From Tubulanus polymorphus (lineage: Eukaryota > Animalia > Nemertea), in the NCBI RefSeq assembly GCF_964204645.1, contig NC_134033.1, positions 2,872,131 through 2,936,130 of the forward strand: a DNA stretch of 64,000 nt, written 5' to 3'. The translations under genes were made by a program, and so were the position numbers. The notes under the pieces were generated by a model that worked only from the letters and a program-made list of their open reading frames with translations, was not told the origin of the DNA and ran no database searches. This document shows, piece after piece, positions 8,350 to 64,000 of the stretch; within the stretch, counting starts at the first letter, position 1, and every line of letters begins with the position of its first letter.

Positions 8350-10011
8350 CGCATTAGATGAACGAATACTATGAGATAAGTTAACAGCAGGGCATAATTA
8401 CCCCGATTATCATAAATACCGTAAATTTTGGTTATTGTTATATCTAACTCACAACATGCTCGAATAGGTAGTAATTTTACCGGAGTCGTGTTTTCCGAAT
8501 TACTAACTCGTAAAAAACCTTCAAAATTATTTCTAACTGTGAAGGATTAAGCTTACACTTAATATCTAATACTTTAACATCTATATCCCCAAGATTCTTG
8601 CGTAAATATAAGCAGGTTTGATTGGAGCGAGAGGGAATCATCCGTTTGAAACTAGAATTTAGGGTTTCATGCATATAAAATTCCCCTAATTCGAAGGCGT
8701 TTATTTTACTAAATAGTAATCTACGATTCAACCCTCAAAAATCTATGAAGTATTGTCATTTAGTTCCGAAAGAAGAAGAATTGAGTTTAACGATGATTTA
8801 AGTCACTCGATGAAAATGATTAAGAATTCATGTCTCTCGCGAGGACGCTGTTAGTTAGATTTATCAATATAACGGTTTCTACCACGAGAGACGAAGCACC
8901 TCCCACCAGAAATATAACATCATAATGCATAAACACAGTTGATTGGGGAATATTGAAATATGTTCTTTTTCACGGACCGAATATACACCAGTGTTGAAAT
9001 AATACAATATTTTAAAGTTCTTTAATATATCTGAATTAAAACTATTATCAACCGATAATAATTTCGTACCAGAAGAACAAATTATATCAGATACTTAAAA
9101 GTTGAATCTACCGCTGGCGCCAACTTATTGTCAATAATAATTATTTAGACACACAAACATTTCCCCAACTATCGGTGAAAAATGCTGAACGGACTGTAAT
9201 GTACATAGATTGAGTCAAATCAAACATTTTTAAATGATGATCATAAGTTTCGGAATTATCAATTCCCCTCATTAATTATTGGTTGGACTTTCGTCGCGTT
9301 CACACTTGGAACCAGTTAGACCGTTCTAAACGGGTCCGTGTCCGGAACGGGACAAATTTAGAACGGACCGCATCAGAGTGCGCGAGTCAGATTCTCGCCG
9401 GGTTTATTGTAACCGTTTCCTAACTAAAGATTCCTAACATTTCTTTGTTTCTATTCTACAACTGTCATCCCCGTCTTACTTGGTTGCTGTTGTTTCTTCA
9501 AAACAATCCGTACCAAACAAGACCTTACTCACCACAATCAGATATCCACGCGCTTCACTTAGCTTCAACTCAGTTATTATATTGACTGTAGAGTGTGAAT
9601 TATCAGAACAGATGTTGACGAAGTGTTTTACAGAGACGCAGAATATTTTGAGGTATAGATAGAAAATGTCATCGAATATTATCCCAAACTGAACGGAGTT
9701 CGGGAGCGACAGTAAATATTTTTAGAGAAATAATTGCACACGATTATAAACACGATATATTGAAACACGTCTAAATTTAGAAACCGCGGTAATTACTGCG
9801 AAACCGAGAACAGATGAAAGTTTCACAAATACGAAACTGGCGTCAGTTTGATGGGAGATCTTTTTACAAAATAATTGGACTCTGGATCAATTCGTCAACT
9901 TCTGATATTTGCGAATTCGTCATTACTTTGCAGCGACTCTTGTGAGAAATATCACGCAAACTTGGAAATAGTTAGAGATGTGTTTGTTTTGAAGCGTGAA
10001 TTGTGTTCAAT

Positions 10012-37720: not shown

Positions 37721-38031
37721 TTAACTTTTCTCTTAATTCTAACGCGTTAGAGATATTCAAATATCGTCAACCCGTTTTCTACAAGTCCAATTATAACTCC
37801 GAAATACGTTATCGGTATTTGCTGTATTTGTTGGTTCGTTATAAGCACAGTTTCTATTCTACCACTGTTAACTTTTCTCTTAATTCTAACGCGTCAGAGA
37901 TATTCAAATATCGTCAACCCGTTTTCTAGAAGTCCGATTATAACGCCGAAATACGTTATCGGTATTTGCTGTATTTGTTGGTTCGTTATAAGCACGGTTT
38001 CTATTCTACCGCTGTCATCGTCGTCTTACTT
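37721..38031 (+). repeat. Two tandem ~147-bp copies of the TM3-ICL2-TM4 CDS fragment in the copy 5 promoter
   Basis: TTAACTTTTCTCTTAATTCTAACGCG... starts at 37721 and again at 37868. Both match ~35022-35185. Confidence 0.92.
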
Positions 38032-38571
38032 GGATTGAGTTGTTTCCTCAAAAAGTCTGCACAGAACATGTCCTTACCGCCACAATCAGATATCCACGCG
38101 CTTCACTTAGCTTTAACTCAGTTATTATATTGACTGTAGAGTGTGAATTGTCAAAACAGATATTGACGAAGTCTTTTACAGAGACGCAGAATATTCTGAA
38201 GTTAATATAGAAAATATCATCGAACATTATCAAAAACTGGTTCGGTTATCAAAACGCAGTTCGGGAGCGACAGTAAATATTTTTAGCGAAATAATCGCAC
38301 ACGATTATAGACACGATATATTGAAGCACGTCTAAATTTAGAAACCGCGGTAATTACAGCGAAACCGAGAACAGATGAAAGTTTTACAAATACGAGACTG
38401 GCGCCAGTTTGATGGGAGAGTTTTTATACAAAATAATTGGACTCAATTAATTCGTCAACTTTAAACATTTGCGAATTCGTCATTACTTTGCAGCCACTCT
38501 TATGAGAAATGTCGCGCAAACTTAGAAATAGTTAGAAATGTGTTTGTTTTGAAGCGTGAATTGTGTTCAAT

Positions 38572-39461
38572 ATGCAGCGAATGAAAGCGTTGTTCGTAGT
38601 TTTACTGATCGCTTGCGGAGACTGTATATTTACGCGGGCTGATCGCGCAAACTCTGTCGAGGAAGCCGCGTCTGTTACAGTCACTTCATCTTGTAACAAC
38701 ACTCAATACTCCGTCGATTCTACGTCTGGTTACATCGTTTCACCGAACTATCCGTCGTTAGTGCGCGGTGTTGAATGTCGTTTGTTCGTCAACAGCTCTT
38801 TACCGGGAAGTTTTCTCGTTCAAGTTTACTACGACATCGAGCCGTCGATATTCTGTAACGAAAACTACCTTCTAGTCGGTGAGTCCGGCAACAAACTCTG
38901 CGCTAACGGAAGAAAACAACTTGATATCCGCAGTAACGGTTTGATTTCGTTGTTGTTTAGGAGTAACGTCGATGGAGCGCGAGGTAGTCGGGTTAACATC
39001 ATATATCGGTTTGAAGAACAGAGTCGCTTGAAAATTGTATATACATGTCACAAGCATGCAGTAAAAGAATTACCAACTCAAACAGGTTATGAATTCATGA
39101 TTTCTACCCTCCGATGTAAATTGTTGTTAGAATGGATCGGGATGCCAGACGGGTTTGCAATGAATTTAACGTTTATACAGATAGATTTCAGATTAAGACC
39201 AGGTGAGGATCCGATGAAAACTCGTCCTCAAATTTCCGACGGATGGAACAGCACCAGTGAACCTATAGCTCTTATACGAGAACAAACCGGACATCCGCCT
39301 TCATCGTTTTATACTCAAACTAACAAAGCACGTATTGAAATTAAGTAGTTTGAAGTCGAAGCTACTCTGGCAAGTTTACAAAATATCAGATTGGAACATC
39401 TCTAACCCGTTAATTCAAGTATATAATAAATCAGGACTGCTCACTACAATTGATGGAATAC
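38572..39461 (+). pseudogene. Copy 5, truncated exon-1 fragment of GRL101-like GPCR
   Basis: Matches exon 1 from the ATG. Stop/frameshift at GAA ATT AAG TAG (39346-39348). Homology continues out of frame to ...GATGGAATAC 39461, then unrelated sequence. The rest of the gene is absent from the window. Confidence 0.9.
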
Positions 39462-40071: not shown

Positions 40072-40462
40072 TTAACCCTTTTCTTTAGTGAGGAAATGGC
40101 TTGATTTTTGGATATAACTTAGGAAATATACCATTTTGTGTGATTTGTTTCTTTATTTGACATTTAGATATACTTTTGCCAAAAAAATATTGTATTTTCT
40201 TCATGAAGTTTAAAAATTTTTATGAGGTGTGATTTGTCATTATTTTTGGGGTAATCATATATATGGAATATGTTATTCTGCATTATCTGATAGCTGTGAA
40301 AGTTACCTTTCATTTGGTGTAAAGATTATCTGTCTATCTTCATAATTCAAAAAGTTATGATGATTTTAGTAGTATCCTAGCTCGTTGTTTAATTGCATCG
40401 GCCATATACCTTGGGCACAAAAGACCTTTTGAGGGAAAAACGGTTGGGCACCAAAGGGTTAT
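40072..40462. mobile_element. Possible non-autonomous piggyBac-like element
   Basis: TTAA-CCCTTT ... AAAGGG-TTAT ends around an AT-rich non-coding interior. The TIR match is short. Confidence 0.35.
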
Positions 40463-40611
40463 GACCACTTTTGGTCTGAAGTCCTGACTACGGAACCGGT
40501 CTCTTGGGCCCATTAAATTAACCAGAAATCCCTCGTTGGTTTTATCAGGGAAGTGTAATGAGACTACCCTGGTTTTATAGATCGATGATGTTTATTTCGT
40601 TTTTGTTGAAG

Positions 40612-42076
40612 GTGGTTTCGATATCGCGATGCAGCTTCCGTCGGGCTGGATCCCGAATTCGTGGAAAATGGTGCTGTGTCCTGTTCGCGGTAACATACAG
40701 TACCGATTCACCGAGAAAAACAAATTCTGGACGCAATTAACATTTCACAATTACAGGTATGGAAATAGTTCTTCCGAGGGATGCACGTAGAAGCATTTTT
40801 GTTTTTAGTTTCTTTGATGATGGAGTTTTAGGAGTAACCCCGAAGCAGTAAGAAAATAGACTTTTCTTCATATAACTGTGCGTTTTATTTTTTACGTAGA
40901 AGCATATTCAAAGAAAGAAGATTTTTACAACAAAAGTTTTGGGGCGTTCCGGGATCAGTTGCGCATCGTACCTTCAGTACAAGTGTTCCTAAATCTTGAG
41001 ACTAGCCTTAAGTTATTGTATTGGTTATAGAACTAAGATGACCCTTATGATAGCGAATTTTAATGGTAATCGGGACATTGTGGGAGTGGATGTGTGTACT
41101 ACGTCATTGATATTGGGGCTGGACTGGTTGGCGTTCAATATTGTCGATATATTCAAATTAGAAATAACTTTCTTGATCCTTGATAATATATCATTCATAG
41201 TATATCATTCGTTGTCGACAATATCGAGCATTATGTGGGTTATTCTTCAAGTCGTCAATAAACTTTCAAGTCAGTTTTCTTTTTATCTTTAGAAATGCCA
41301 TTTACGAAGTGAATTACCGATGGCCGGGAGAAGAGGCGTGGCGAACGACCGAACGCGCTAAATACGGCGCGTTCTTCATCATGAAGGACGCACCCGCAGA
41401 CGGCGTCATCGAGGTCAAGGTCAAGTCCATCTTCAACTACGACGTCGTCGGCCGTACTACCGGCTGGAGTGAGTGTTGGCGGATCTTACAGGGATCCGTC
41501 AGAAATCTACCACCCTATTTAACACAATTTCGATGGAAATACCATTCTTAATTACTACGCCGCCAAATACGACCGACCTACGCCCAGCTATCTAAAGCCG
41601 GGCGTAGGTCGGCCTTGCGACGGCTTGCGACTCACTGCGACGCGACTTACTGCAACCGCCAGCGACGATCGCGTCGCAACGACCAACCGACCTACGCTAC
41701 CTTGCGACTGCCAGCGACGGGTTGCGACTGCCAGCAACGCCAGTCGGAATGAGTCGCACATGTTCTACTTTCTGCGACGCGACGCGACCATCGCAACCGA
41801 TCTACGCGCTCTTGCGACTGGAGAGCAAATAGTCGCACACAGTCGCTGACAATCGCGTCGCAACCGACTTGTGCAGCCACTTGTGACGCAACGCGACGAT
41901 CTCGTCGCATCGCAAGGTCGACCTACACCCATCGTTCAAAGATGCGCCTTGCTCTGTTCAGTTCACGTACCGGTATGTTAATTTTCAATTGATTTTTTTT
42001 TGTAGATTTGGATTACCAAGATTTCGGTGTTCAGCAGCCAGCAGTTTGCATTCAAACGACTCCCGATACTGCCTGA
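40612..42076 (+). CDS. Last three exons of an expansin-like (EXLX-type, end of DPBB + CBM63) gene; 5' exons not found
   Basis: Exons 40612-40756 (TTTTTGTTGAAG| ... AG|GTATGG), 41293-41468 (TTTTATCTTTAG| ... A|GTGAGT), 42006-42076 (TTTTTTTGTAG| ... TGA). Phases 2 and 1 match. AATAAA at 42081. Spliced: GFDIAMQLPSGWIPNSWKMVLCPVRGNIQYRFTEKNKFWTQLTFHNYRNAIYEVNYRWPGEEAWRTTERAKYGAFFIMKDAPADGVIEVKVKSIFNYDVVGRTTGWNLDYQDFGVQQPAVCIQTTPDTA*. Confidence 0.75.
41600..41930. mobile_element. MITE with 21-bp TIRs and internal GCGAC/GTCGC repeats, inside the last expansin-like intron
   Basis: GGGCGTAGGTCGGCCTTGCGA vs reverse complement of TCGCAAGGTCGACCTACACCC. An extra TIR copy (CGACCTACGCCC) lies at ~41574-41585. 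Confidence 0.8.
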
Positions 42077-42706
42077 TATCAATAAATACTAATTCACGAA
42101 AGACAAGACGTGTATTTCTCATTAGTTCGTCATCGGAGAGGAGAGAGAACATTCCGGGGCCAGTTACTGAGGGGCATGTCAACCAAACACCAGACATTGT
42201 GCTCGGATGCTGGATTGATGCAAATTTGAACCCCTATGAAAATTCCTTGGGACGCCTGACTATCCATTGGTTAACTGTAATCAACTTTTGAGCAAAAGGT
42301 CCCCGGTATTTAAGGCCTTATTACACCAACCAGAACAGAACGTTCATTGAGAACCGCCACAGGGCATGTACCGCTGGGTACGCCAGCATCGTACATATAC
42401 AGGACTTGGTGAAAAAACAGGATCCACTACTGAGTTCGAACATTGATAATCCATGTATCGAAATACTGATCTCAACTCTGGGAGTCGAACTTAACTAAGA
42501 ACGTTCGTAAATACTGTGGTTATCTTTTTTTTTTGTTCACGTATATGGCGACTCTCTAGCGCGACATTACGTGCGCAACATCTCTTTATTTCTAACAGAT
42601 TCCTGATGATGGCTGTCAGTAAAAACCGAAATGTTGTGGGTTCATTTTCGCGATAAAACGGTATTTTTTCGTTTTATCCCGCGATAACAATTCGTGGGCT
42701 GGCTGG

Positions 42707-42952
42707 ATGAGCTAGGTCTGAGAATGAGCTAGGTCTGAGAATGAGCTAGGTCTGGCGCGAGTGAGCTAGGTCTCGAATGAGCTAGGTCTGATAATGAGCT
42801 AGGTCTGGGAATGAGCTAGGTCTGGCGGGAATGAGCTAGGTCTGGGAATGAGCTAGGTCTAGGAATAAGCTAGGTCTGGGAATGAGCTAGGTCTGGGAAT
42901 GATCTAGTTCTGAGAATGAGCTAGGTCTGATAATGAGCTAGGCCTGGGAATG
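42707..42952. repeat. 17-bp minisatellite (ATGAGCTAGGTCTGGGA)n, ~14 units
   Basis: Direct reading of the tandem units. Confidence 0.95.
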
Positions 42953-43269
42953 ATTTTTGATCGAGGCATTAGTTAACAGTCTATTGCTAATAGTTCTAAG
43001 AATTTTCTTCGAATTCAGCGACAATTCGAGTCATAAACAATGGAAATTGATTATTTGAATGTAGTGCGAACTGTGCTAAGATATTTCTTGTGCATTCTAA
43101 TGAGGACTGGTCCACTTCTTATATTTGACCGATGTATCCTCCAGCTAATGAATTATTGATACCCACTGGTCAACTTCTTATTCATTGTATTTGAAATGAA
43201 CATGTTTCAGTTTGTAAGAATAGTACAGAGGGTGTGGTACGTATTATCCTAGAACCACGCGTTTGTAGT

Positions 43270-44135
43270 TCAGTGGTATTTTGTAGCCAGTGGTGGTCGT
43301 GTCCATTGAACCGCATTATGACAAACTCAGTTCATATTGTGTCCTCTTATTGTGGTCGGTCTTTGAAATCGTGTAATACGTGTTCGATTTGAATTGAACC
43401 AGTTTTGAAGATTAATTCTTAACACACGTTGAATTCACTATATACGTCCTTACGTGAGGTTAGGTGAGTTGAATCTTAAACGGGATTTTGTAAATCTATA
43501 AGCTATAAGGGCTCGGGCTTCTTTACTTGAATATTGATTCATCAGTCAGAATTGAAACCTGTAAAATATGAAATTGTTTTCTTTTTCAGATCAGCCAATC
43601 GTCATTGAGGACCTCATTGCTTCCAATACCGCGGGGCTGACTAAACCAACGCTGGTTTCAAAATAATCTATGATTCTCCACACAGAATTGAATTGGTGGT
43701 GAGTAGATTTGTAGGTTTTTTAATACTGGATATAACGGATTGTATCGAGTCAAATTAAAAATCATAACGGTGATCATTACGTTTTTTCAGAGAAGCTCTC
43801 CTTCCTCTGATTGCTGTCAATGCGTGCTGGACTTAATCAACAAATACACAGTGGACTTCAGGCCTTCTTCTCTTACTCGGGACCTGTTTGCTGTCAATAC
43901 CTGCTGCGGACTAAATCAACAAATGCATATTTGGAATACAGACATTCCTCGATTACTCCAGACCCGATTGCTGTCTGCGTGCTGGACTTAACCAACCTTG
44001 ACCAACAGAGCTCAGTGTTGTAGCCTGCTTGGATGTCATATCTTCTAAGTAACAAACAGAAGACTGATCGAAGTAATCCATGAATTGGTGAGTAGAATTT
44101 CTAACAGTTTTTCGTATAGGAAACTTAGGTTAGAG
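43270..44135 (-). repeat. Inverted copy of the 36170-37300 dispersed repeat
   Basis: Collinear reverse-complement blocks as listed for 36170-37300. Confidence 0.7.
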
Positions 44136-44320
44136 ACATTTATACAGCACCTGAGAGTAGTCGAGCTATAGGCTTGAGAAGGTGGTCGCAATTATTAAAT
44201 ATAGATCGCAATTTTGTCCTAAATCATTGATTCAAATTAGTTTCGATCGTCTGCTTGCCTGGAATTATGAATGTAATCTCTGATCGGTCAAGGACGATTA
44301 ATCCGGTTATGACGACTGGT

Positions 44321-46713
44321 ATGAAGTTCGGGTTTGACTATTTCACGGAATGGTTTCGTATCGTAATAATGTGATAAATGTGTGAGTTCCCGGGTCCGGA
44401 GATTGTGGTTCTAAACAACGCAACAGATGTCGCCTTCGCTTAATTTACACTTGTCGTATAGTTTTCTCAGGAGACCGAGGAGGTTAGCTCGTTGGGCACA
44501 GGACGGCGCTCCGGCCCACCGGCGAATTCATGACAGAAATGGACTTTTTTACTAAAATGGTTATTTCAATTTCCGACCAACAGATGATCCCCTCGTTTAC
44601 CAGACCTAACACCTTGCCACTACACGCTCAACCTCGCTTAAGTCATTATCAGATAAGTCATCACACTACATCAGTATTTGTATTTACAATTCTCTGGAGT
44701 AATTTGTAATACGTTCTTTCGGTAAGTCATCATCTTAACGATTCTCCCAACTAAAGAAGACTTAAAAAGCGATGTTGACTGTACTTTCTCCGAGCCGAAT
44801 GAATGAAGACATAGCTATTTTGTGATGGCCCTTTCTGGTCTCCAGCGACGAATCGGCTTCTGCAAGTAAATAAAGCTAGTGAGAGTATTCTTAGAAAAAG
44901 TTATGGCAGATTTTGAATAAAATTACCGTGGTAAACCATTGTGGAAACCACTTGGCTTGGTCCAAAGTTGTTACAGCCTGTGAGCTCTGTGACTGCACCC
45001 TCACTTATTGATGTTAACTCGGCATTCTTTATTTCATTGTTATCTTTAAGTGAAAAATAAATCATATCATGTTATTGTGTTCTGTTTTAAGTTTGTAATT
45101 TTGGTTGAATCTGCGACAAGTGTAAATTACTTATTCTCTTATTGTTCTTGCTCAGTCACACGTATAAAATCAGTAAAATACATTGAAGTGAAGCTGAAAT
45201 TGACCTGATGCAATTGATACAAAGTTCTTTCGAGTTGTTCCTTGAGTGAACACGAAATAGTCGGAGTCTCCCTCCACCGGCGCGAACACGTCTCCCTCCA
45301 TCGCCTTCCACTATCTAGGCCGTTTCGTGATGCAGTTCCACATATTTGGGGACGGCGTTCTGCTTAGGGTTAGGTTTAGAGATTAAGACATTGTTAAAAC
45401 GAATTTGAGTTAGAAATACACGTTGAAAAGGTATCACTGACGTGTCTAAAGCCTAACAACCACAACCACCTTTTCATATACAACCACCTTTTCATGAAAT
45501 ATGCCCTGCATATTTTTAAAATGTTGATGCTATTTGTTTTGTAGGGTGTCGTAGTATAAGTGAATAACGTTGTGAGGAGGTGGAATACCTGAAGATATGC
45601 GAGGTGTAAATACTGAAATTCATTGCGTGTGTGTTCAATGAAAATAAAGTGTTTGAAATAAAGAATTCGATTTCTGCAATTTAGGTCGGGTTTATGAACT
45701 TTTCATAGAATTACCGAAATAACGGGTTTCGTCAACACACCAAACACTCGAAGTTCAAGAGAATTCGAAATGGTTATAGATAAATGCATTATTTCGAAAG
45801 TGTCTTTCTTGGTTTTGACTATTTCAAATCGCTAAACACTTCACTTACCTAGAGGAACGCGACATTGTCAAATGTATCATTATCGGAACCTTGAACCAGC
45901 AGCGGAGAGAAGTCCTTATACAGCACCAGCGGATGAGCAAAGCGTCGTTACAGCATCCAAACTCTACTGGGTGGTTCTTAGAAAACGCAACAGATGTCAT
46001 TTTTCGGATATATTTATAACCAAAGATTATAAAACTGATTATAAAACTTTTTATTCAACTAAGCCAGGTATTCACTCAAAGATCAGCTTCACTATTCCGA
46101 AGTATTGTATTTGGTTTATTGTTTTTATACGTGTGACTGAGCAAGAATTATTAAAATAAAGGAGACTCGTAATTTACACTTGTTGCAGATTTAAATAAAG
46201 TGACCAATTTGAAACCTTGATTCCTACATGACTTTTATTCAAAATTGTACAAAGTTTATTCGAATGTAAAAACGGTTTCTGGGACAAAATCATTTCTGAT
46301 GAGGCTCTGCTTGCTAAAGTTAATGACATCTCCATTCATCAGCCAGATACCGGTTAAAGGCACATTATTTCAACTTTTAAATCAATCTCTACAGTAATTC
46401 AGTTAATATGGAAATTAGTGGCACGAGCTTGAGGATTTGTGAGCGAAGTTGACGTCTGACAGGACGCAAAGCGCAATAACCATCACAGTGAAAGTCAGTT
46501 TCTAACCTCCATCAGTCTGTGGGCCGGAGCGCCGTCCTGTGCCCACCGAGCTAACCTCCTCGGTCTCCTGAGAAAACTCTACAAGTGTAAATTAGCGAAG
46601 GCGACATCTGTTGCGTTGTTTAGAACCACAATCTCCGGAACCGGTGACTTACACATTTATAACATTATTACAATAAGAAGCCATTCCGTGAAATAGTCAA
46701 ACCCACACTTCAT
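44321..46713. mobile_element. ~2.4-kb foldback-like element with ~200-bp outer inverted repeats and a nested inner pair
   Basis: 44321-44519 is the reverse complement of 46519-46713 (e.g. TGGGCACAGGACGGCGCTCCGGCCCAC / GTGGGCCGGAGCGCCGTCCTGTGCCCA). 45108-45198 pairs with 46083-46191. No transposase ORF. Confidence 0.75.
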
Positions 46714-47747
46714 TCAAATATATATTTATATTGGCAACCTTTCACAAACCTTTACTCGACTCCTCGGTGCCCGTTATAGTCTAGCCCACCTTCCTATACT
46801 GCCGAATTGCCCGTATCAACTCTGGACCAGGTCAAATGTTGTTTAGAATTGGTTTTATATTTTGCACTTAAAGCCAATTTAAAAGTTTGAACGGACACTT
46901 CAGTTTCAGTAAATCCCTGCAAAAGTTTTGTGTTATTGAGCGTCAAGTGACAAAGCCACAATTTTAGTTATTTCTCAATAATTTTCATATTTGTCTCGCG
47001 TCTAAATACAGAATCTAGAATGGTTTTAGTCTCAGACGATTAAAGCGGGTTACAACATATACGATGTGGATTGTATGACCCAATATGCAATGAAGCAAAT
47101 GTTTTCGATTGTTTATATCTGATAAATCGTTAGATTACTCGTTACTCGAATCTCTTCAAGTCGAATAAGCATTGAAACTCCGAAAACAAATACTGGAATA
47201 CTTACATTCGATGCTGGCAATCAGATTTCCGTTGTTTAATTGGAATTCAAACACAAATCACTGAGATCACAATCGATTCGAGTTAAGATTGAGTCCACTG
47301 TATTTCAGTTTGCTATAACGAGGGTCCGTCATTTCTTCGACTAAGCTTAAACCTAACCTAACCTTAATTTCCTAAACAGAAATAATTCAAAATTTCTACT
47401 CTACCGTTGGGTTCGAATCCCGAAACGAATGGTTCGCCGCGTTGATACGGGGATAAACATGCTGGACCCAGTGGCACAGTTGTGAGTTAAAGCTAAATCC
47501 GAGATAAATACAAATTACACGAATTAATGAGTAATTCGGTGGATTTTACCGGATTTGCCAGACGCAATAGAAAAGAAATTCTGCAGTTTGCTGATGTAAT
47601 TAAGCCACTTTTCGTCAACCAAATGTATCTCGACAAAATACAGCATCATGAAATCAGTTGCATGAATCAAATTTGAAATCGATGGTAACATTTACATGTA
47701 ACATGGTTACACGTAGTTACATGTTAGAATGTTTTCCAATCACAATC

Positions 47748-48020
47748 GGGCGGACCGGATGGCTTAGTCGGTCGGCGACTAGCGTGTCACCGCTGTGGCC
47801 CGGGTTCGAGTCTCGGAGGAGGCGGGTCAGGATGTGGCAAATGATCTCCGGTAAGCGGGCGAGTCGAGAGTACTGTCCTCCCTGGAATGAGGTTGCTAAT
47901 GCGTGAGTCCTACAAAATAACTGGTGTGGGGTAAATTATGTTTAATTCAGTCGTTTCTGGCTGAATTATTTATTTATCCCACAATACCGGTCCAGGCTGC
48001 GGAGTAATTCCCCCAGGGAC
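47748..48020 (+). mobile_element. tRNA-derived SINE
   Basis: Pol III A box TGGCTTAGTCGG (47760) and B box GGTTCGAGTCT (47803). No clean cloverleaf. The 3' limit is approximate. Confidence 0.65.
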
Positions 48021-49398
48021 CTTCGACTTTTTTACAATATTAGTTTGTTATTTTAAGTTTAGTGGTGAGGGTTTGGGAAATTTTTTTATATTTATTCAAT
48101 TCCTCGAACTGAAGAAATCCAAGCGACTATTCGGTACAAGCAGCGCACGCGGTGATCAATCACAGTTCTTTCTCAACTGATGATAAAACTTTGATAATTT
48201 TTTTAACTTCACCAGATTTCGGTTAAAGAAGATGTGTACGCGGTGATGTCTGGTGAACTTGTGTATAAATTCGGATTCAAAACGACTCTATCCAATAGAG
48301 AATCACTCACTGGAGACCTGCCATACGCTCTACTACACAATAGTGCCGCGTCACTGCACAAACCCTTAAGCAAACTTCGATATCCTAAAGCAAAACTCGA
48401 AAATAGTAAAATTGAGCCGGTATTATAGTTCAAAACCAGACGTAAATAGAAGGGAAATCTACACTAAAGTTTGTTGGATAGTTTAGATAAAATTTCAGCT
48501 TACAATTTTAGGCAAAAATCGTAGCATTCGATATTTCTATCTTAAACAATATGTGCCTCTATGAATAGTCGAATTAAACTCGATGACCTGTATAGGCCCC
48601 ATTGAAAATGTTTGGCACGAATTGAATAGTTCTTTCGGATTAGCGTCACGGACTCGGGTCTGTCACAGGAATGCGCGATCGAGCTTTCTGATTGACCCAT
48701 TCCGGTCGCATCGATGATGCACCGTCGTTGATTGGTTGACGTAGGTATTAGAAGCGCGTTTCGAGCCGCCCGGTGCCAGTCCGAGAACCGATGTCCAGTG
48801 ATGAAGGTCGACCTATAAGAGCTCTGCAACAAGGCGTGAAGAACGTGTGGCTTTAAGCAAACAACCTACTGATAAGCGGCTGATGATGTTAGGAGAGACT
48901 GGAACGTGAAGGAATTTGTGACGCCTAGCGATTGAGAACGCAAGATGAGACTGGCGGCTGTTGATGCTGATGATTGCGGTGGAGATCCCGATACTGCTGC
49001 TGCTGCTGCTGTTGATGTCTGATTTCAACTACAAACAGATTACGGCTAATTTGCTGATGAAGACGAGTTGCTGTTGTCGCTGATTTCCGATGTTCTATTT
49101 CGCGCACATTCATACATTATGAATATTGTGTCTTTTTAGGGTTAAACCGAAACCAGTTCGCTACTACTGACAACTACATGTACACAACTCGTTTGTCGCA
49201 ACGTCCTAACTAGTCTGCTGCTGCTGCTGCATTGGGAACCGCATCAACCCACATTTTGCTGTTTCGGTATCTTTACATTAAGATAAGGTAATTATATTGA
49301 ACTACACCCATCCTTACATTTTGCATATTCAATCTTCAATAGCTTGACGATTATCCGATTTTCGTTTCCGTTTTTCAGCCGGCTATATTTGAGTTACA

Positions 49399-49820
49399 GC
49401 AACATCTTCAAATCTCGAGACGCAGACTCAACTCCGACTAAAGCACCATCTCCAAACCTCGAGATGCAGACTCCACTCCATCTCCAAACCTCGAGACGCA
49501 TACTCTACTCCGACTAAAGCACCATCTCCAAACCTCGAGACATAGACTCTACTCCGACTAAAGCACCATCTCCAAACCTCGAGACGCAGACTCTACTCCG
49601 ACTAAAGCACCATCTCCAAACCTCGAGACGCAGACTCTACTCCGACTAAAGCACCATCTCCAAACCTCGAGACGCAGACTCTACTCCGACTAAAGCACCA
49701 TCTCCAAACCTCGAGACGCAGACTCTACTCCGACTAAAGCACCATCTCCAAACCTCGAGACGCAGACTCTACTCCGACTAAAGCACCATCTCCAAACCTC
49801 GAGACGCAGACTCTACTCCG
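49399..49820. repeat. 44-bp minisatellite (GCACCATCTCCAAACCTCGAGACGCAGACTCTACTCCGACTAAA)n, ~9-10 units
   Basis: Unit starts at 49519, 49563, 49607 etc.; the 3' units are identical. Confidence 0.95.
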
Positions 49821-50203: not shown

Positions 50204-50324
50204 ACGTACTGGCAGCACACAGAGGAACTCATATTTATCCATTGCTTAAGCAAATTTTATCAAAAAAATAATGCCATCTACCGGGCGAGACAGGAACTAG
50301 TTCCCATTTCAACCCGGTAGATGG

Positions 50325-51232
50325 TAATAGAGAATGAGACAAGAGTGGGCAGAGACAGAGTAAGAGATCAGAGTGAGGAGAGATGAGAGTGAAACAGAGT
50401 GAGGAGAGAGTGAAACAGAGTGAGAGAGTGAGAATGAGACAGAGTGAGGAGAGATGAGAGTGAAACAGATGAGAGTGAAACAGAGTGAGGAGAGATGAGA
50501 GTGAAACAGAGTGAGGAGAGAGTGAAACAGAGTGAGAGAGTGAGAATGAGACAGAGTGAGGAGAGATGAGAGTGAAACAGAGTGAGGAGAGATGAGAGTG
50601 AAACAGAGTGAGGAGAGAGTGAGAATGAGACAGAATGAGGAGAGATGAGAGTGAAACAGAGTGAGAGAGTGAGAATGAGACAGAGTGAGGAGAGATGAGA
50701 GTGAAACAGAGTGAGGAGAGATGAGAGTGAAACAGAGTGAGGAGAGAGTGAGAATGAGACAGAATGAGGAGAGATGAGAGTGAAACAGAGTGAGGAGAGA
50801 GTGAGAATGAGACAGAGTGAGGAGAGATGAGAGTGAAACAGAGTGAGGAGAGAGTGAGAATGAGACAGAATGAGGAGAGATGAGAGTGAAACAGAGTGAG
50901 AGAGTGAGAATGAGACAGAGTGAGGAGAGATGAGAGTGAAACAGAGTGAGGAGAGATGAGAGTGAAACAGAGTGAGGAGAGAGTGAGAATGAGACAGAAT
51001 GAGGAGAGATGAGAGTGAAACAGAGTGAGAGAGTGAGAATGAGACAGAGTGAGGAGAGATGAGAGTGAAACAGAGTGAGGAGAGAGTGAGAATGAGACAG
51101 AGTGAGGAGAGATGAGAGTGAAACAGAGTGAGGAGAGAGTGAGAATGAGACAGAGTGAGGATAGATGAGAGTGAAACAGAGTGAGGAGAGAGTGAGAATG
51201 AGAGAGGATAGAAAGAGATAGAGAGGATAGGA
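50325..51232. repeat. Purine-rich compound minisatellite (GAGTGAGGAGAGATGAGAGTGAAACA / GAGTGAGGAGAGAGTGAGAATGAGACA)
   Basis: ~900 bp of alternating ~22-27-bp GA-rich units. Explains the spurious S/L/H-rich minus-strand ORFs. Confidence 0.95.
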
Positions 51233-51460
51233 TGGCATATCACCTGAACTTATGTTCCTCTTGTTTTCTATCTAGAATGCCGTTTACAGTTTCTAGTTCA
51301 AACAGATATTTATCCCATCAGCAGTAATGTTATTATTTTGTCCTCGTGGACATAAAGTTCACTATAACTGAAGTCAAGTTCTCCCAATATGAGTTCGTTT
51401 GTTTGTTTATACTGTCGCTGAGTTTGAACACTGCCCACACCATCTGATGTAGTCCTGATC

Positions 51461-52657: not shown

Positions 52658-52903
52658 TAGTCCAGTTAGTCCACATGTAGTTCGGTAAGTTCACATGTAG
52701 TTCGGTAAGTTCACATGTAGTCCAGTTAGTTCACTAGTAGTCCAGTTAGTGCACATATAGTTCACATGTAGTTCGGTAAGTTCACATGTAGTCCAGTTAG
52801 TTCACTAGTAGTCCGGTTAGTGCACATATAGTTCACATGTAGTCCGGTAAGTTCACATATAGTCCGGTTAGTTCACTAGTAGTCCGGTAAGTTCACTAGT
52901 CCG
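52658..52903. repeat. ~20-bp minisatellite (GTAGTCCGGTTAGTTCACAT-like)
   Basis: Direct reading of the tandem units. Confidence 0.9.
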
Positions 52904-55911: not shown

Positions 55912-56437
55912 ATAGTTCCACCATATTGATGACAAACATCCTAAAAATATACATGAAACTTAATAAATTTGAGTTATGTTAGAGTTAAGTCTAGTTACTG
56001 GTGTATCATAGAAATGGCAATCTAAGGTACCCCCCAAAACGAGGGTTAGGGGTCAAATATTTTTTGTCTCCAATTTCGGAGAAATTTAGTATAGACATGT
56101 ATTCTGGGGTGCTGATCACAAATCTGAAAGAATTCTTAGGATCCGAGGCCTCAAAAATGAGAAATTCGAATTCTTAGGGGTACCCCTTAAATTTTAAAAA
56201 GGCCCTGGACCCCAGGGTTTTTGAGATATTTGAAATCTGATTGCAGATTTGGAATCAGCACCCCCGAAAATATTTAGGACTAAAATTTTAAGCAAATCGA
56301 AGAGATTCGATTTTTTGGCCAAAAACGGCAAAAATCTAAGGTGTAAGTCCAGGAGTTTTTTTTCGGCGAAAAATTTTTTTTCTCTGATTCCTTCTAAACT
56401 TGGTAGGAAGATGTATTCCGAGGTGTAGATTCCGGAT
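55912..56437 (+). repeat. Direct repeat B, joined directly to the copy 6 promoter
   Basis: Matches 51461-52058. Junction TCCGGAT|CTACCGCGGTCATCCCCG enters the array promoter inside the TM4-derived fragment. Confidence 0.88.
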
Positions 56438-56992
56438 CTACCGCGGTCATCCCCGTCTTACTTGGTTGCTATTGTTTCTTCAAAACAATCTGTACCAAAC
56501 AAGACCTTACCCGCCACAATCAGATATCCACGCGCTTCACTTAGCTTCAACTCAGTTATTATATTGACTGTAGAGTGTGAATTATCAAAACAGATATTGA
56601 CGAAGTGTTTTACAGAGACGCAGAATATTTTGAGGTAAAGATAGAAAATGTCATCGAATATTATCACAAACTGAACGCAGTTCGGGAGCGACAGTAAATA
56701 TTTTTAGAGAAATAATTGCACATGATTATAAACAAGATATATTGAAACACGTCTAATTTTAGAAACCGCGGTAATTACAGCGAAACCGAGCGCAGGTGAA
56801 AGTAACAGAAATACGAGACTGGCGCCAGTTTGATGGGAGATCTTTTTACAAAATAATTGGACTCGATCAATTCGTCAACTTCTGACATTCTGACAACTCG
56901 TCATTACTTTGCAGCGACTCTTATGAGAAATATCGCGCAAACTTGGAAATAGTTAGAAATGTGTTAGTTTTGAAGCGTGAATTGTGTTCAAT

Positions 56993-59900
56993 ATGCAGCG
57001 AATGAAAGCGTTGTTCGTAGTTTTACTGATCGCTTGCGGAGACTGTATATTTACGCGGGCTGATCGCGCAAACTCTGTCGAGGAAGCCGCGTCTGTTACA
57101 GTCAGTTCATCTTGTAACAACACTCAATACTCCGTCGATTCTACGTCTGGTTACATCGTTTCACCGAACTATCCGTCGTTAGTGCGCGGTGTTGAATGTC
57201 GTTGGTTCGTCAACAGCTCTTTACCGGGAAGTTTTCTCGTTCAAGTTTACTACGACATCGAGCCGTCGATATTCTGTAACGAAAACTACCTTCTCGTCGG
57301 CGAGTCCGACAACAAACTCTGCGCTACCGGAAGAAAACGACTTGATATCCGCAGTAACGGTTTGATTTCGTTGTTGTTTAGGAGTAACGTCGATGGAGCG
57401 CGAGGTAGTCGGGTTTATATTATATATCGTTTTGTAGAACAAAGTCGCTTGAAAATCTTACATACATGTTACAAACATGCAGTAAAAGAATTACCAACTC
57501 AAACAGGTTATGAATTCATGATTTCTATCCGGCGATGTAAATTGTTGTTAGAATGGATCGGGATGCCAGACGGGTTTGCAATGAATTTAACGTTTATACA
57601 GATAGATTTCAGATTAAGACCAGGTGAGGATCCGATGAAAACTCGTCCTCAAATTTACGACGGATGGAACAGCACCAGTGAACCTATAGCTCTTATACGA
57701 GAAAAAACCGGACATCCACCTTCATCGTTTTATACTAAAACTAATAAAGCACGCATAGAATTCATTTCAAGTAGACGGTCGTTTAAGTCACAGTTACTCG
57801 TGCAAGTTTACAAAATATCAGATTGGAACATCTCAAACCCGTTAATTCAAGTCTATAATAAATCAGGACTGCTCACTACAATTGATGGAATACCACATAT
57901 AGTAACTCAGTCTAAACACTTATACTGCTGGTCTATCACAGTCGATGTTCTGCAGCACGTCGTCTTCAACTGGACACGTGATCTCGTCTCGTCACCAGGT
58001 GTCGTTGGTGTATATAAACAGGAAGGGTTACTTATTGTGAGAACTGATATTTTACTCAGTTTTAACCATCTTAAATCTCTGAGTGTAAAATCAGACGGAT
58101 TTCTCGTGATTCTGTGCGTTTTAACGACATCGGATTTTTCAAGTATGAATTTGAAAATAGAATTCGAAGTGAAATCAATGACAATATTAGACTTTTACGT
58201 CAACAAGCCACAGATACGGGTAAGTTTATTACAGTGATTTGTAAATTAGGTTCGTGTTATAGAATCATTGTAATTATCTATGATTTTGATGGCGATTTTG
58301 ACCAGTGAAACTTTACCGAGAAACTTTGAATAACAACGTTATGTGTGACCCAAATTTCAATATATTCGGACGCACTTGTTGTTTACGCAGAGTAATTATG
58401 ATGATTTGTGGAGGAATTTAAGTTAAGTTTCGATAGCTACATTTTGAACTATTATCAATATATCGAGGTCGTACAGATTTTGAAATTGTTGTATTGTAAA
58501 CGTTCAATGCTGTAATCAATTCTCTTATATTTCAGCATTTATCCAGAAAATCAATACCAGCTAATCGATTGTTCCCGAGTTCAAAGAATACATTGTATCG
58601 TGTAACTACATTACAACTAAACTGGAAAGTGAACATCTATGAAGAACGGTTGAAACTAACAGTGTTATCAGAAAACTGTGATCGAGCTGGTTTTTATATA
58701 TTTGATGGTAGTAATTTCACAGCTAGACGCTATGGTCCGTATTGTCCTGGTTCATACTACGGTCGATCTGTCGTCAGCCTGATTACATCAGGTGGACCGG
58801 TTACTGTAGTAGCATACGCTTATCATCAGTTAACAGTTGATCGTTCTGACCAGTCATATCTTATATTTGCTCCTACTGATTGTGATGGTTATGTTCTACA
58901 GGAAGAAGAACGTCAGATCAATATGACGTCACACTGTCTCGTGATTACACCTGAAAATCGACGCCTTCGCTTGAAAAATATTCACATATTATCAGAACAC
59001 GAATATCAAATTGACCGATGTTTTCTCAAGATGTCATTGTCATGTGACCAGTTTCTGAGTTTGAGTAATCAGTTTCTTAATAACAGTCTTGTATTAAACA
59101 CTGTAGATTTCACAGTTTATGCGGTTGGATTTTGGCAGCGACCACTTATAGTTAAACTACGTCGTAAATGTCTAGGAGTGAAAAAATCAGATAGTTTTGG
59201 ATTTGCCGGTTCTCGTCTTCCAGTTACTACTAAAGATAAATGTGGACTCGTGCAGTCACCGAACTACCCGGGTTCGGCAGGAAGTACATCAAAATCTATT
59301 TCCTATAAATTTGAAAACCCAATACAACAAAATATATTTCAATATTACAGATTTATTGTCAAATCTATTGGATCAGTTTCATGCGAAACAAATAACGATA
59401 GAGCGAATGCTCCGATTATTCTAATACAACTAATGAATTATATAACTTTTCATAATGGTGGATATTTCAAAACTATTAAATCTCAACATGAAACTAAAAT
59501 ATGTGAAAATAACGCGGTTCGTGGACTTATATTTCACAGTATGAAAGATAACACTTTGCGTTTTGAAGTAAACAATTTAATTCCGACATTTCAATTGCAA
59601 TACAATTTACACGAGTCGTTACCGATTAAACATTTCGATGATTTCTACTGTAAACAAGGATTTCTGGATTCGGGAATTTCCTGCATCAAATTCATCCGAG
59701 ATGAACGTCTGAATTGGGAGAACGCTGAAATATACTGTAGACAGAAGTACGCGGGACATCTACTCAGTATCAACTCAGAACAGGAAATGATTTCAATCAA
59801 AAGATTATTCGCTACAGAACTTCTCCGAATGGCGTACACATTAAAAGCGCTCATAATGACGATTGGATTAAAATGGAAGGTAAGACTAATGTATTCAAAT

Positions 59901-62900
59901 ATTAGAAAGATTTTTAAAGAAGTGATATATTTCATTTTCTTCACGAAACAGAATGATGGTTATTACACGTGGACTGACGGTAAACCATTGAGCTACACAG
60001 AGTGGTATAAACCTGTTATTAATGAAACGATACCAGAAGTTATTCGAGGATTGATATCTCCTCTACGAAAACAACCGATAAATGACGTCAATATGCCGTG
60101 TACGGCTATGATACTGAATAATCCACGAGGATCAGCGAACTGGGTTCGATTCCCGTGTCAAATCGAGGAGACGCACACGACATTCATTTGTGAATCTGAG
60201 AGAATCGACATCAAAAACAAACACAATTCAACGATAAACGATGCGAACAATTCAACAAATACAGACTTAAATAAAACTATTGATCAAACGATTCCCAACG
60301 TCACTTTAATTAATTCAACCTGTCCAAGAGGTTGGGTAACTATTTCCGGACAATGTTATCAAATACTAACCGACTGGAAAAACAATCGAGGTTTGAATAT
60401 TCGGAGTGCTAGAGAAATGTGTCACAGCATCCACGCCGAAATAGCAAAAATCACCTCAAATACAGAAAGTGACACGAAAAACTTGGTCAGCGAATTTCAA
60501 TATCGACATCAATATGGCGCTATACTGACGATGGACCGAGACGGGTTCAAAGTTATCAAACCACTGGTGACCAGAAATGAAATTACTTATATTCAATCAG
60601 TGAAATGGTCAGTGACTGCCTTCAATGATACAAAAGATAAAGTGCATTCCGTGATGTGTACCTATAATGTAACTGCTGAAGAGTTAGCTTCTATAAGCGG
60701 TTGTAAATCGTGGCAGTTTGAATGTAACGATCAAAGATGTATCAGCGACCATCGCGTATGTGATACCAGACACGACTGTCAACACGGTGAAGATGAACTC
60801 GATTGTACGGATATCAATTTACACAGTCAGTTCCGCTGTAACGATGGACAGTTTATATCGATTAGCGGTTTCTGCGACTTTATGAGAGATTGCGTCGATG
60901 GCTCGGATGAGAACTCTTGCTATCATCCACCGTGTTTATCTACGCAATATCGCTGTTCCAATCAGCAATGCATCGATAGTTATAAACGATGTGACGGAAT
61001 AGCCAACTGTAAAGACGGTTCCGATGAGATCGGATGCACTGCCGAAAATTGCCAGGGGTTCTCGTGCGCGGACGGTGAATGTATTAGTTTTCAGTTGTAT
61101 CGGGATGGTGTCGTGGATTGTAGCGGAAGTCTCGAAGAAGACGAATTGGTCACTAATATGACAGTGAATCCCGAGGTTTACTGTAATAATGACAATCACT
61201 GTTCGACTCGTTTCACGGATCTGTGTAAGGAATCGGATGAACAAAGATGTTCGTTCAATTCTCCTCGCTGTTATTCCCGACACGAAAGGTGTATTTTAGA
61301 AAGGATGGCGATTGGTTTCCCGGTATGTAGAAATCTTGAACATATATCCGTGTGTAATGACTTCGAATGCGCGGCTGGTACTGTAAAATGTCCGGCATCT
61401 TACTGTATACCGATCAGACACGTTTGTGACGGTCGATCCGATTGTCCTAATTCAGAAGATGAACGAAACTGCAAGACTTGGTCGTGTCCGGGAATGTTTA
61501 AATGTGGCCAGGAAAATCGATGTATTCCGCAATCTGAAGTTTGCGACGGAGTCGTAAATTGTAAACATAACTCGGATGACGAGTCATACTGTAAGGTCAC
61601 GTGTCCTGAACGTTGTAATTGCCGGGGTCATTTCATCGATTGTGAAAATGCTCTTTTATCAGATATTACCGGCCGTTTTATAGAATCAACTCGGGTTTTG
61701 ATTTTGTCGAATAACCGAGTCGTATTTAACGAGTCGACGTTCAACTCTTTCATTTATCTTCGTTTTCTCGATATTTCGGGCAATAATTTGTCTAACATCG
61801 TTCCAAACGCGTTTTCTAATCTAAACAATCTACACACATTAGACCTTACTCACAACCGTATAACATCATTATCTGCTAATACATTCGCAGGTTTGATCGG
61901 TTTAAAAGAACTATTTCTTATCGGAAATCCGCTGCAACATTTAGAAGACGGTAGTTTCCGAGGTCTGACGTCACTTACTGTTCTCGATCTTCACGGACTT
62001 TCTATATCGGTTCTCGGTGAAAATGTATTTAAAGGTTTATCCGCATTACAGTCGTTAAATATCAGCAGTAACAGAATACATTATATTTCCAGCTATGTTT
62101 TTTACGGATTGGTTGGACTTGAAATTCTAGATCTCGTCAACAATTCCGAAGTAATATCCGTACAAAGAAACGTTCTGGGCGATCTTACATCATTGAAATA
62201 CCTCGCTTCGGATGCTTACAAATTTTGCTGCATGGCACCGAATGTTGACCGATGTCTTCCCGAAGCTGATCAATTTTCCACCTGTTCTGACCTGATGGGT
62301 AACACTGTACTGAGGGCCATCATCTGGATGATCGCATCTTTCAGTTTTCTCGCTAACAGTATCGTTATTGTATTTCGCATTCAAGCTTTGCGGATGGAAT
62401 CCACCGGAACACGTAACACATCTTCAGATATCCTCATCATAAACATTGCCGGTTGTGATTTTCTGATGTCGGTCTATTTGTTTTTGATCGCAGGAGCTGA
62501 CCACGCATTCAAAGGCGTTTATTATCTGAATTCTGAAACCTGGACGGATAGCTCATTATGTCGTCTCGCCGGGGTTATTGTCACCGTGTCGTGCGAAGGT
62601 TCCTTAACTTTCCTCTTAATTCTAACGCGTCAGAGATATTCGAATATCGTCAACCCGTTTTCCAGAAGTCCGATTATAACTCCGAAATACGTTACCGGTA
62701 TTTGTTGCATCTGTTGGCTCGTTATAAGCACAGTTTCTATTCTACCGCTGTCATCGTCGTCTTACTTCGGAGACAATTTTTACGGTACAACCGGAGTTTG
62801 TTTGCCTATGAATTTACTGACGATCGACGTCAATGGCTGGCACTATTCATTCGCTATTTTTGCCGTGTTTAATCCGGCCATATTGGCTACGATAATGACG

Positions 62901-63206
62901 ACGTACGCTCAGATGTATAGACTCGTATCTGGGAGTAGGTCGGGTTCGGGTAGAGCCGATCCTACCGAACTGGTTTTAGCACGAAGGAGTTTAGTAATCA
63001 ATCTTTGTAATCTATTTTGCTGGCTACCGATAATAATCGTCCAGTTTTGCGCCGTATTTTCGGTCGAGATACCGAACCAGGTGGCCGCTTGGCTGGCCGT
63101 TCTATTTTTACCGATCAACTCGTCTCTGAATCCGCTTCTTTATACAATACTGACGATCGATATGAAATCAATTAGAACGAGATATAAACGTCAACAAAAG
63201 AAGTAG
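56993..63206 (+). CDS. Copy 6, intact GRL101-like GPCR, ~1941 aa, distinct C-terminus (KSIRTRYKRQQKK)
   Basis: Exons 56993-58219, 58536-59879, 59952-63206. Intron 2 is 72 nt, in frame and stop-free, so the ORF track reads through it. The 3' flank is unrelated to the other copies. Confidence 0.92.
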
Positions 63207-64000
63207 ATTAAGAACACTTCAATAGCAATAAAGGAGCTTTTAAACGAATCGTTTTAGCGTTCATGGTCGCGCACCAAACTCTAGTAATGAATCTAAAGAA
63301 CAAAGAACAGATATTAACGATGACCTTTGGGCCCGTGGTCCATTCAGTTTTTATATCACTACTTTATCTACACAATTCATATAAATTAATGTTTTTTTCG
63401 TAGCTATTAAATTCATTGTAGATTGTTTGTTGAATGCAATAGTATTTACTTCAGGATGTGGATTTAAGGGGCTCGGTGAGCCCTTTACTGTCCAGTGTAA
63501 TTGAAATAGACGATTACATAGATGACGACGTATTAATCTATGAATGTATTCACTGATGTAGTGTGAGCGTGTGTGTAAGAGTGATTGGTTTGATTTTTCT
63601 TTTAGGGCAGCACGGCTCCGATAGATCTTTGTGATCTCTTCGTGTAGCCCACATTTTCTTGTTACATTTTGTCACTGTATATCATGCGATATCAATAATG
63701 TAATAATGCAACGACCTAATGAAAAATAAACACTATACTACTTTACTAAATGTGCCACCGGATGAAAGTATTTTTCAGCCACCACCGAATCGTATGGTGA
63801 CCGATTCGGGTTAACGAAATTGCCAAGTAAAATAGAGTGCAATATACCTCATGCAAAATATCATAAGCATTGAATATCATGATTGAAATATGCAATTAGA
63901 ATTTTCAATAGAATACGAAGTCAAGTTTACCGCTAAAAAGACTATATATATTCACTATTTTATCTACTTGCTCTTTCCTGGCATGATTAAATCCTTGAAA

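Follow-up and report, generated by a model that had tools for sequence, protein, structure and literature searches.

The expansin-like locus detected in a 64,000-nucleotide stretch of the Tubulanus polymorphus genome (contig NC_134033.1, positions 2,872,131 to 2,936,130, hereafter the window) arose, in our reading, by a recent segmental duplication that was truncated at the 5' end and kept only the last three exons of a single-copy parent gene; the copy was spread with an array of GPCR genes and most likely yields no working expansin; we give this reading a probability of about 0.7. The original prediction had taken the locus for an expansin-like gene in its own right, and as a whole gene it did not hold up, since the copy begins within intron 8 of the parent and is missing both the signal peptide and almost the whole of domain 1. 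The complete paralogue that the same prediction proposed to seek in the genome was found as a single gene, the only complete one, 140 kb upstream of the window locus (C9:~2772350-2778030, assembly G000).

The window copy and its surroundings comprise the following features:

37997-39461, forward strand: 5' fragment of a GPCR gene of the array, just upstream of the truncated expansin copy and within the duplicated unit
40454-40611, forward strand: what is left of the upstream intron of the parent; the match to the complete gene begins at 40454 (5' breakpoint, L022 position 7427)
40612-40756, forward strand: exon 1 of the window copy (145 nt), corresponding to exon 8 of the 10 coding exons of the parent
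40757-41292, forward strand: intron 1 (GT-AG, phase 2)
41293-41468, forward strand: exon 2 (176 nt), encoding most of the CBM63-like domain 2
41469-42005, forward strand: intron 2 (GT-AG, phase 1), with a high-copy repeat inside
42006-42076, forward strand: last exon, with 22 full codons and a TGA stop at 42074-42076
42087-48000, forward strand: co-duplicated 3' flank, matching DNA that follows the complete gene; the query ended at 48000
42707-42953, 49398-49820, 50330-51203 and 52658-52900: minisatellites with units of 17, 44, about 53 and about 71 nt, respectively

Exon 1 encodes the last strand of the DPBB domain 1, the interdomain W..V.CP linker and the start of the CBM63-like domain 2. 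Exon 1 opens in phase 1, contains an in-frame ATG at 40629 and carries a Pro>Leu change private to this copy at 40674-40676; the window has no partner exon ahead of it. The conserved Asp that had been proposed for its GFD motif proved by alignment to be the equivalent of Asp82 (40620-40622; residue numbering after 2BH0). The aromatic triad of domain 2 is retained as F/W/Y at the aligned positions W125/W126/Y157 (alignments of a sister-copy protein and of exon 1 with 2BH0/9MS4), with the F/W pair in exon 1 at 40725-40730 and the Tyr157 equivalent in exon 2 at 41363-41365. Every exon is open, giving 130 codons in all; the acceptors consist of a polypyrimidine tract plus AG, and the donors are GTATGG and GTGAGT. 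Reading of the window sequence confirmed the three predicted exons, their splice sites, the phases 2 and 1 and the stop codon; the AATAAA signal is likewise present (42081-42086), but it follows the stop by 4 nt rather than by the claimed 5 nt. Both window junctions are also used in the RefSeq models of sister copies P0007 (XP_074658214.1) and P0010 (XP_074658306.1), and among the models for sister copies P0007, P0008 and P0010 the first junction occurs in all three and both junctions in two. The public-run contigs covering the window stretch span both introns without a splice joint, so those runs behave as DNA; splicing of the window exons themselves is predicted from their sequence.

The three 3' exons occur nine times in the genome, eight times on contig C9 and once on C22. 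Upstream exons accompany only the copy at C9:2776587, and the 8 extra copies are 5'-truncated and about 95-98% identical. At L022 position 8302 every truncated copy departs from the parent as assembled (A against G), and at 9025 so does each of those retaining the last exon (A against T). The second domain-1 (DPBB) exon is single-copy, and a genome-wide search placed domain-1 exons at C9:2773265-2776117 only. The window copy and six others begin at positions 7427-7432 of L022, the sequence from which the complete gene was read, and the remaining one at 7534; all these points fall in the intron before the GFDIA exon (parent intron 8), and GPCR-array DNA precedes the start of all eight. One copy has lost the last exon, and the window copy has carried along at least 6 kb of 3' flank. 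Contig depth in DNA runs, a rough measure, agrees with the assembly: 14.7 on the DPBB exon against about 170-180 on the 3' exons in one run (X1), and about 13 against 160 in the other (X2), an about twelve-fold excess whose presence in two runs argues against an assembly artefact.

What the window holds is the last strand of domain 1 followed by domain 2 only, short of the two-domain layout of DPBB plus CBM63, and no signal-peptide exon lies within it, the candidate pair being 68 kb upstream. That these exons form the 3' part of a complete stand-alone gene whose domain-1 exons are hidden upstream, in or near the window, is hardly credible: exon 1 does begin in phase 1 behind a good acceptor, but the genome-wide search found domain-1 exons at the parent alone, and the DNA before 40454 consists of repeat and GPCR-fragment sequence. 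Expansion of the nearby GPCR array would have spread the truncated duplicate to eight places, and the flagged locus is most likely a by-product of this receptor-array duplication. The fragments are presumed to be inactive; that of the window most likely makes no working expansin and could yield a binding domain at most. Upstream of another truncated copy, at C9:4174054, an ORF with integrase (rve) and chromodomain and its neighbour ORFs are inserted (L029:5533-9820), an insertion resembling a mobile element of the Polinton/Maverick type or a relative of it.

Most of the window is a tandem array of CUB-like/LDLa/LRR/7TM receptors. These form a GRL101-like family (CUB-like, six LDLa, LRR, 7TM) occupying window positions 1-39461 and 56437-64000 and C9 from ~2.27 to 4.6 Mb, with copies 92-94% identical, many of them with frameshifts or stops, and 314 candidates genome-wide. 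A piece of ~148 nt from the receptor's own transmembrane coding sequence is tandemly doubled at window positions 37721-38031, upstream of the next receptor copy. The GPCR fragment that precedes the expansin copy contains an ORF (38563-39348) terminating at a frameshift; a GPCR-CUB/expansin fusion was considered for the window and ruled out, as the fragment ends at this frameshift with a stop at 39348. Two long minus-strand ORFs at 50309-51243 overlie a purine-rich minisatellite.

The complete gene has ten coding exons with 622 codons plus stop, and nine introns with GT-AG sites and consistent phases. A signal-peptide exon comes first; two exons for domain 1 and two for domain 2 follow, then a 575-nt exon with the Pro/Thr repeat, another domain-1 exon and the three window-type exons. 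The predicted protein (622 aa) consists of a signal peptide, EXLX module 1, a Pro/Thr/Glu/His repeat of ~165 aa, EXLX module 2 and a short tail; the linker between the modules (L022:6222-6796) is a coding minisatellite with a 30-nt unit, translated as a 10-aa Thr/Glu/Pro/His repeat in about 16 copies. Module 2, the one copied in the window, has equivalents of Asp71 and Asp82 (KD..C..C....GGFD, assigned by motif spacing with a one-residue insertion present), Phe/Trp at 125/126, Tyr157, and Thr at the Lys119 position; the Asp71 equivalent is present only in the parent and not in the window copy. Module 1 keeps Asp71, Lys119, Trp/Trp and Tyr157, and has Asn at position 82. An intronless mitochondrial EF-Ts gene (L022:498-1469, minus strand) is divergently oriented to the complete gene and precedes its first coding exon by about 1.9 kb.

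Homology searches of the spliced model were run one exon at a time, the spliced proteins used being database records. Exon 1 alone, compared with 177,635 PDB sequences, matched a Xanthomonas expansin (9MS4, E=0.001) and BsEXLX1 (2BH0, E=0.034), and in pairwise comparisons window exons 1 and 2 matched the natural homologue P0003 with E=8e-7 and 4e-7. The NCBIfam profile NF041144 scored P0003 best (E=4e-14, 52 bits), followed by RefSeq sister copies P0007/P0010 (E about 5e-10 to 6e-10, 39 bits) and the module-1 domain-2 exon of the parent (E=7e-6); the values of 52 and 39 bits stay below its curated cut-off of 100 bits, and they were obtained with exons and records, not with the joined parent. 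A profile comparison matched 2BH0 at E=1e-10. With the PDB expansin matches, P0003 and the NF041144 match of the sister copy, the call of an expansin-like sequence of EXLX1/YoaJ type stands, as does that of an intron-bearing, genuine animal-genome sequence, given its T. polymorphus contig and GT-AG introns. The suggested correspondence of DFGVQ to the expansin G.Q(F) motif is not clear, and the proposed Pfam check with DPBB_1 and Expansin_C gave no match for the exons, the RefSeq copies or P0003; Expansin_C also missed its Bacillus control, so its blank is uninformative for the EXLX branch.

Among 1.84 billion proteins, the parent domain-1 exon retrieved two real relatives, P0003 and the L039 gene described below. 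P0003 is a 279-aa intronless sequence on a 906-nt Logan contig, its record being probably a transcript, and it matches BsEXLX1 across both domains (E=2e-7). The parent domain-1 exon reaches the L039 domain-1 exon with E=1e-13, and the latter reaches NF041144 with 1e-8, whereas the direct match of the parent domain 1 is weak (0.14). By sequence homology, exon by exon, the parent shows domain 1 followed by domain 2 (domain 2: 7e-6, and 6e-10 via P0007). The Atlas neighbours of P0003 (0.91-0.92) and P0007 (0.87, a lead only) are EXLX clusters. By features, the expansin-like homologue also draws a score of 0.89 with a Nucleocytoviricota cluster of 53 members (279 aa, no Pfam), again as a lead only; a scan of viral contigs for expansin-like relatives found none, and the plasmid search gave weak Clostridium EXLX matches only. 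Word-index searches returned no named animal homologue outside T. polymorphus, a blank that says nothing because proteins as long as the 622-aa parent or long fusions fall outside the length range searched. Inspection of the locus led us to dismiss as chance a DPBB_1 row on C8 (E=0.54) from the genome-wide search; P0001 was set aside as a spurious cytochrome-repeat match. For the structure model of P0003 (pLDDT 39) the top Foldseek matches were all expansins, with TM about 0.3; that of P0007 (pLDDT 64) is a generic beta-sandwich, without expansin match and without recovery of the domain-2 topology.

On architecture and residues, we judge that the parent belongs with the EXLX expansin-like proteins, though the curated cut-offs are missed. 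It resembles BsEXLX1/YoaJ (2BH0/3D30) and other microbial EXLX proteins (NF041144; 9MS4, 9MS5, 7WVR) in the order DPBB plus CBM63-like, the W..V.CP linker, the aromatic triad positions and, in module 2, the Asp71/Asp82 equivalents. Conversely, the tandem modules, the Pro/Thr repeat and the spliceosomal introns set the parent apart, the scores fall far below the NF041144 cut-off (39-52 against 100 bits), and the window copy is without domain 1; at residue level, module 1 differs from BsEXLX1 by Asn82, and module 2 by Phe for Trp125 and by Thr at the Lys119 position. In BsEXLX1, the D82N substitution abolishes creep activity, and the triad W125/W126/Y157 binds cellulose (PMC5072189). By analogy with this protein, the parent would be secreted and would bind beta-1,4-glycan fibres with two heads: in each domain 2 the flat aromatic triad would dock on chitin or cellulose, module 2, with its Asp71/Asp82 equivalents, would disrupt chain packing non-hydrolytically, and module 1, with Asn82, would serve chiefly for anchoring. 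We regard this mode of action, with a loosening module 2 and an anchoring module 1, as somewhat probable, while secretion, ligand and activity are themselves predicted from the sequence. Of the two, chitin would be the more probable ligand, given the CBM14 of the other animal homologue. The literature searched contained no earlier report of a tandem two-module expansin, and, as far as our searches reached, the tandem layout and the shared introns described below are new.

The other animal homologue, the L039 gene (L039-L042, from ENA assemblies with contigs of 0.5-1 Mb), consists of an intron-bearing EXLX part followed by a CBM14-like exon, and adjoins an animal 7TM gene; judging by the appearance of its repeats and GPCR, its host is probably a coral. 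The worm and L039 genes share three introns: a phase-0 intron that precedes the first Cys of module 1 by exactly 13 residues, a phase-1 intron that lies three residues ahead of the Asp82 position, and a phase-2 intron within N.[KR]|.P. Position and phase of window intron 1 are common to parent module 1 and the L039 gene. A rough estimate of the chance of three coinciding introns is 1e-7, or 1e-4 given a strong insertion-site bias. This coincidence speaks for a common animal ancestor that already had the introns, rather than for contamination or a recent transfer, and argues that any horizontal transfer is very old, while it is silent on where the animal ancestor obtained the gene. We consider old vertical inheritance of an animal expansin gene to be probable. 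At position 82 the L039 gene has Asn, like module 1; its single EXLX module, however, leads into CBM14 and a long low-complexity region, where the worm gene has a second EXLX module. In Exaiptasia pallida, gene 19685 was annotated as 'Expansin-YoaJ' with a chitin-binding domain and is up-regulated in the pedal disc (PMC6626399); the L039-L041 gene and gene 19685 have the architecture of EXLX plus chitin binding in common. In L039:10041-12423, L042:11667-18051, L057 and L058, CBM14 runs in frame into a low-complexity exon of ~950 aa, with a further CBM14 downstream; these are probable coral genes, with relatives in two other assemblies.

Animal expansin annotations were already known in Oikopleura and bivalves, and have been called unconfirmed and possibly contamination (Chase et al., bioRxiv 10.1101/637728). 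That flag, together with best named matches to bacterial and fungal EXLX, could suggest that the worm gene is a contaminant or an artefact of assembly, or that this lineage alone acquired it recently from a microbe by horizontal transfer. We hold this to be very improbable, as the complete gene sits on a 16.5-Mb contig, adjoins the EF-Ts gene, which is identical to RefSeq T. polymorphus XP_074658122.1, contains nine spliceosomal introns, and is represented in DNA runs of two samples at multi-copy depth, while a recent transfer is at odds with the three intron positions and phases held in common with another animal's gene. Compared by description, the bivalve and Oikopleura expansins are annotated metazoan genes as well, to which the worm gene adds host-genome context and introns. 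A broader scenario, which we find unlikely as a whole, would make the two-domain expansin-like genes an ancient overlooked animal family, with the shared introns already in place in the cnidarian-bilaterian ancestor, acting on chitin or self-made fibres; an internal doubling in the worm would have produced one Asp82 and one Asn82 module, and secreted domain-2-only genes would be arising via exon recruitment across the nested GPCR array.

The main competitor of the reading as inert duplicates is that some truncated copies, possibly the window one, function as genes of recent origin, encoding a secreted glycan binder of domain 2 only, with borrowed signal-peptide exons, two small exons preceding a GPCR array that would be nested in an intron of 43-68 kb. 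RefSeq annotates at least three copies as coding, and XP_074658306.1 (P0010) has exons of 46 and 39 nt (C9:2994582 and 2995156), the pair ending in phase 1, joined over about 43 kb to the GFDIA exon at C9:3038093, this join being a gene-model prediction. An exon pair 98% identical to these lies on the same strand 68 kb upstream of the window copy (C9:2844176/2844757); however, several same-strand GPCR genes lie between, such a pair is the next upstream feature in only 2 of the 8 truncated copies, and three minus-strand copies are without any pair upstream. The truncated copies have open frames without stops, keep their splice sites and the aromatic triad, and show 0 exon indels where intron rates predict about 5 (P about 0.007, a value inflated by homopolymer indels). 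Variants confined to them comprise 10 synonymous and 9 nonsynonymous changes (ratio 0.26, P=0.003), but against the intron rate the nonsynonymous deficit is not significant (9 versus 12.7 expected, P=0.19), the clearer deficit being among variants shared with the parent, and one copy has lost exon 3. The evidence for selection is mixed, and we regard functional truncated copies as doubtful, preferring their interpretation as by-products of array duplication.

The orphan signal-peptide exon pair (46 + 39 nt) occurs in five copies (C9:2844176/2844757, 2994582/2995156, 3152692, 3823000 and 3984052; L043-L047), followed by tRNA-Glu(TTC) in both copies scanned and mostly then by a GPCR unit; no parent gene was found for this pair, and the pair nearest the window copy sits 28 kb before the window start. 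Homology of these exons to the EXLX N-terminus was considered and found unsupported, their phase being different too. Grass group-2/3 pollen allergens (Phl p 2, Phl p 3) are domain-2-only derivatives of expansins, and offer an analogy for functional truncated copies, with weak Foldseek rows; the allergens, however, come from plant beta-expansins by an independent origin, whereas the worm fragments are predicted products.

The published survey left undecided whether animal expansins are genes or contamination (bioRxiv 10.1101/637728), and the intron-rich nemertean gene makes this question testable. The complete gene of T. polymorphus encodes a candidate animal protein for the non-enzymatic remodelling of chitin or cellulose.
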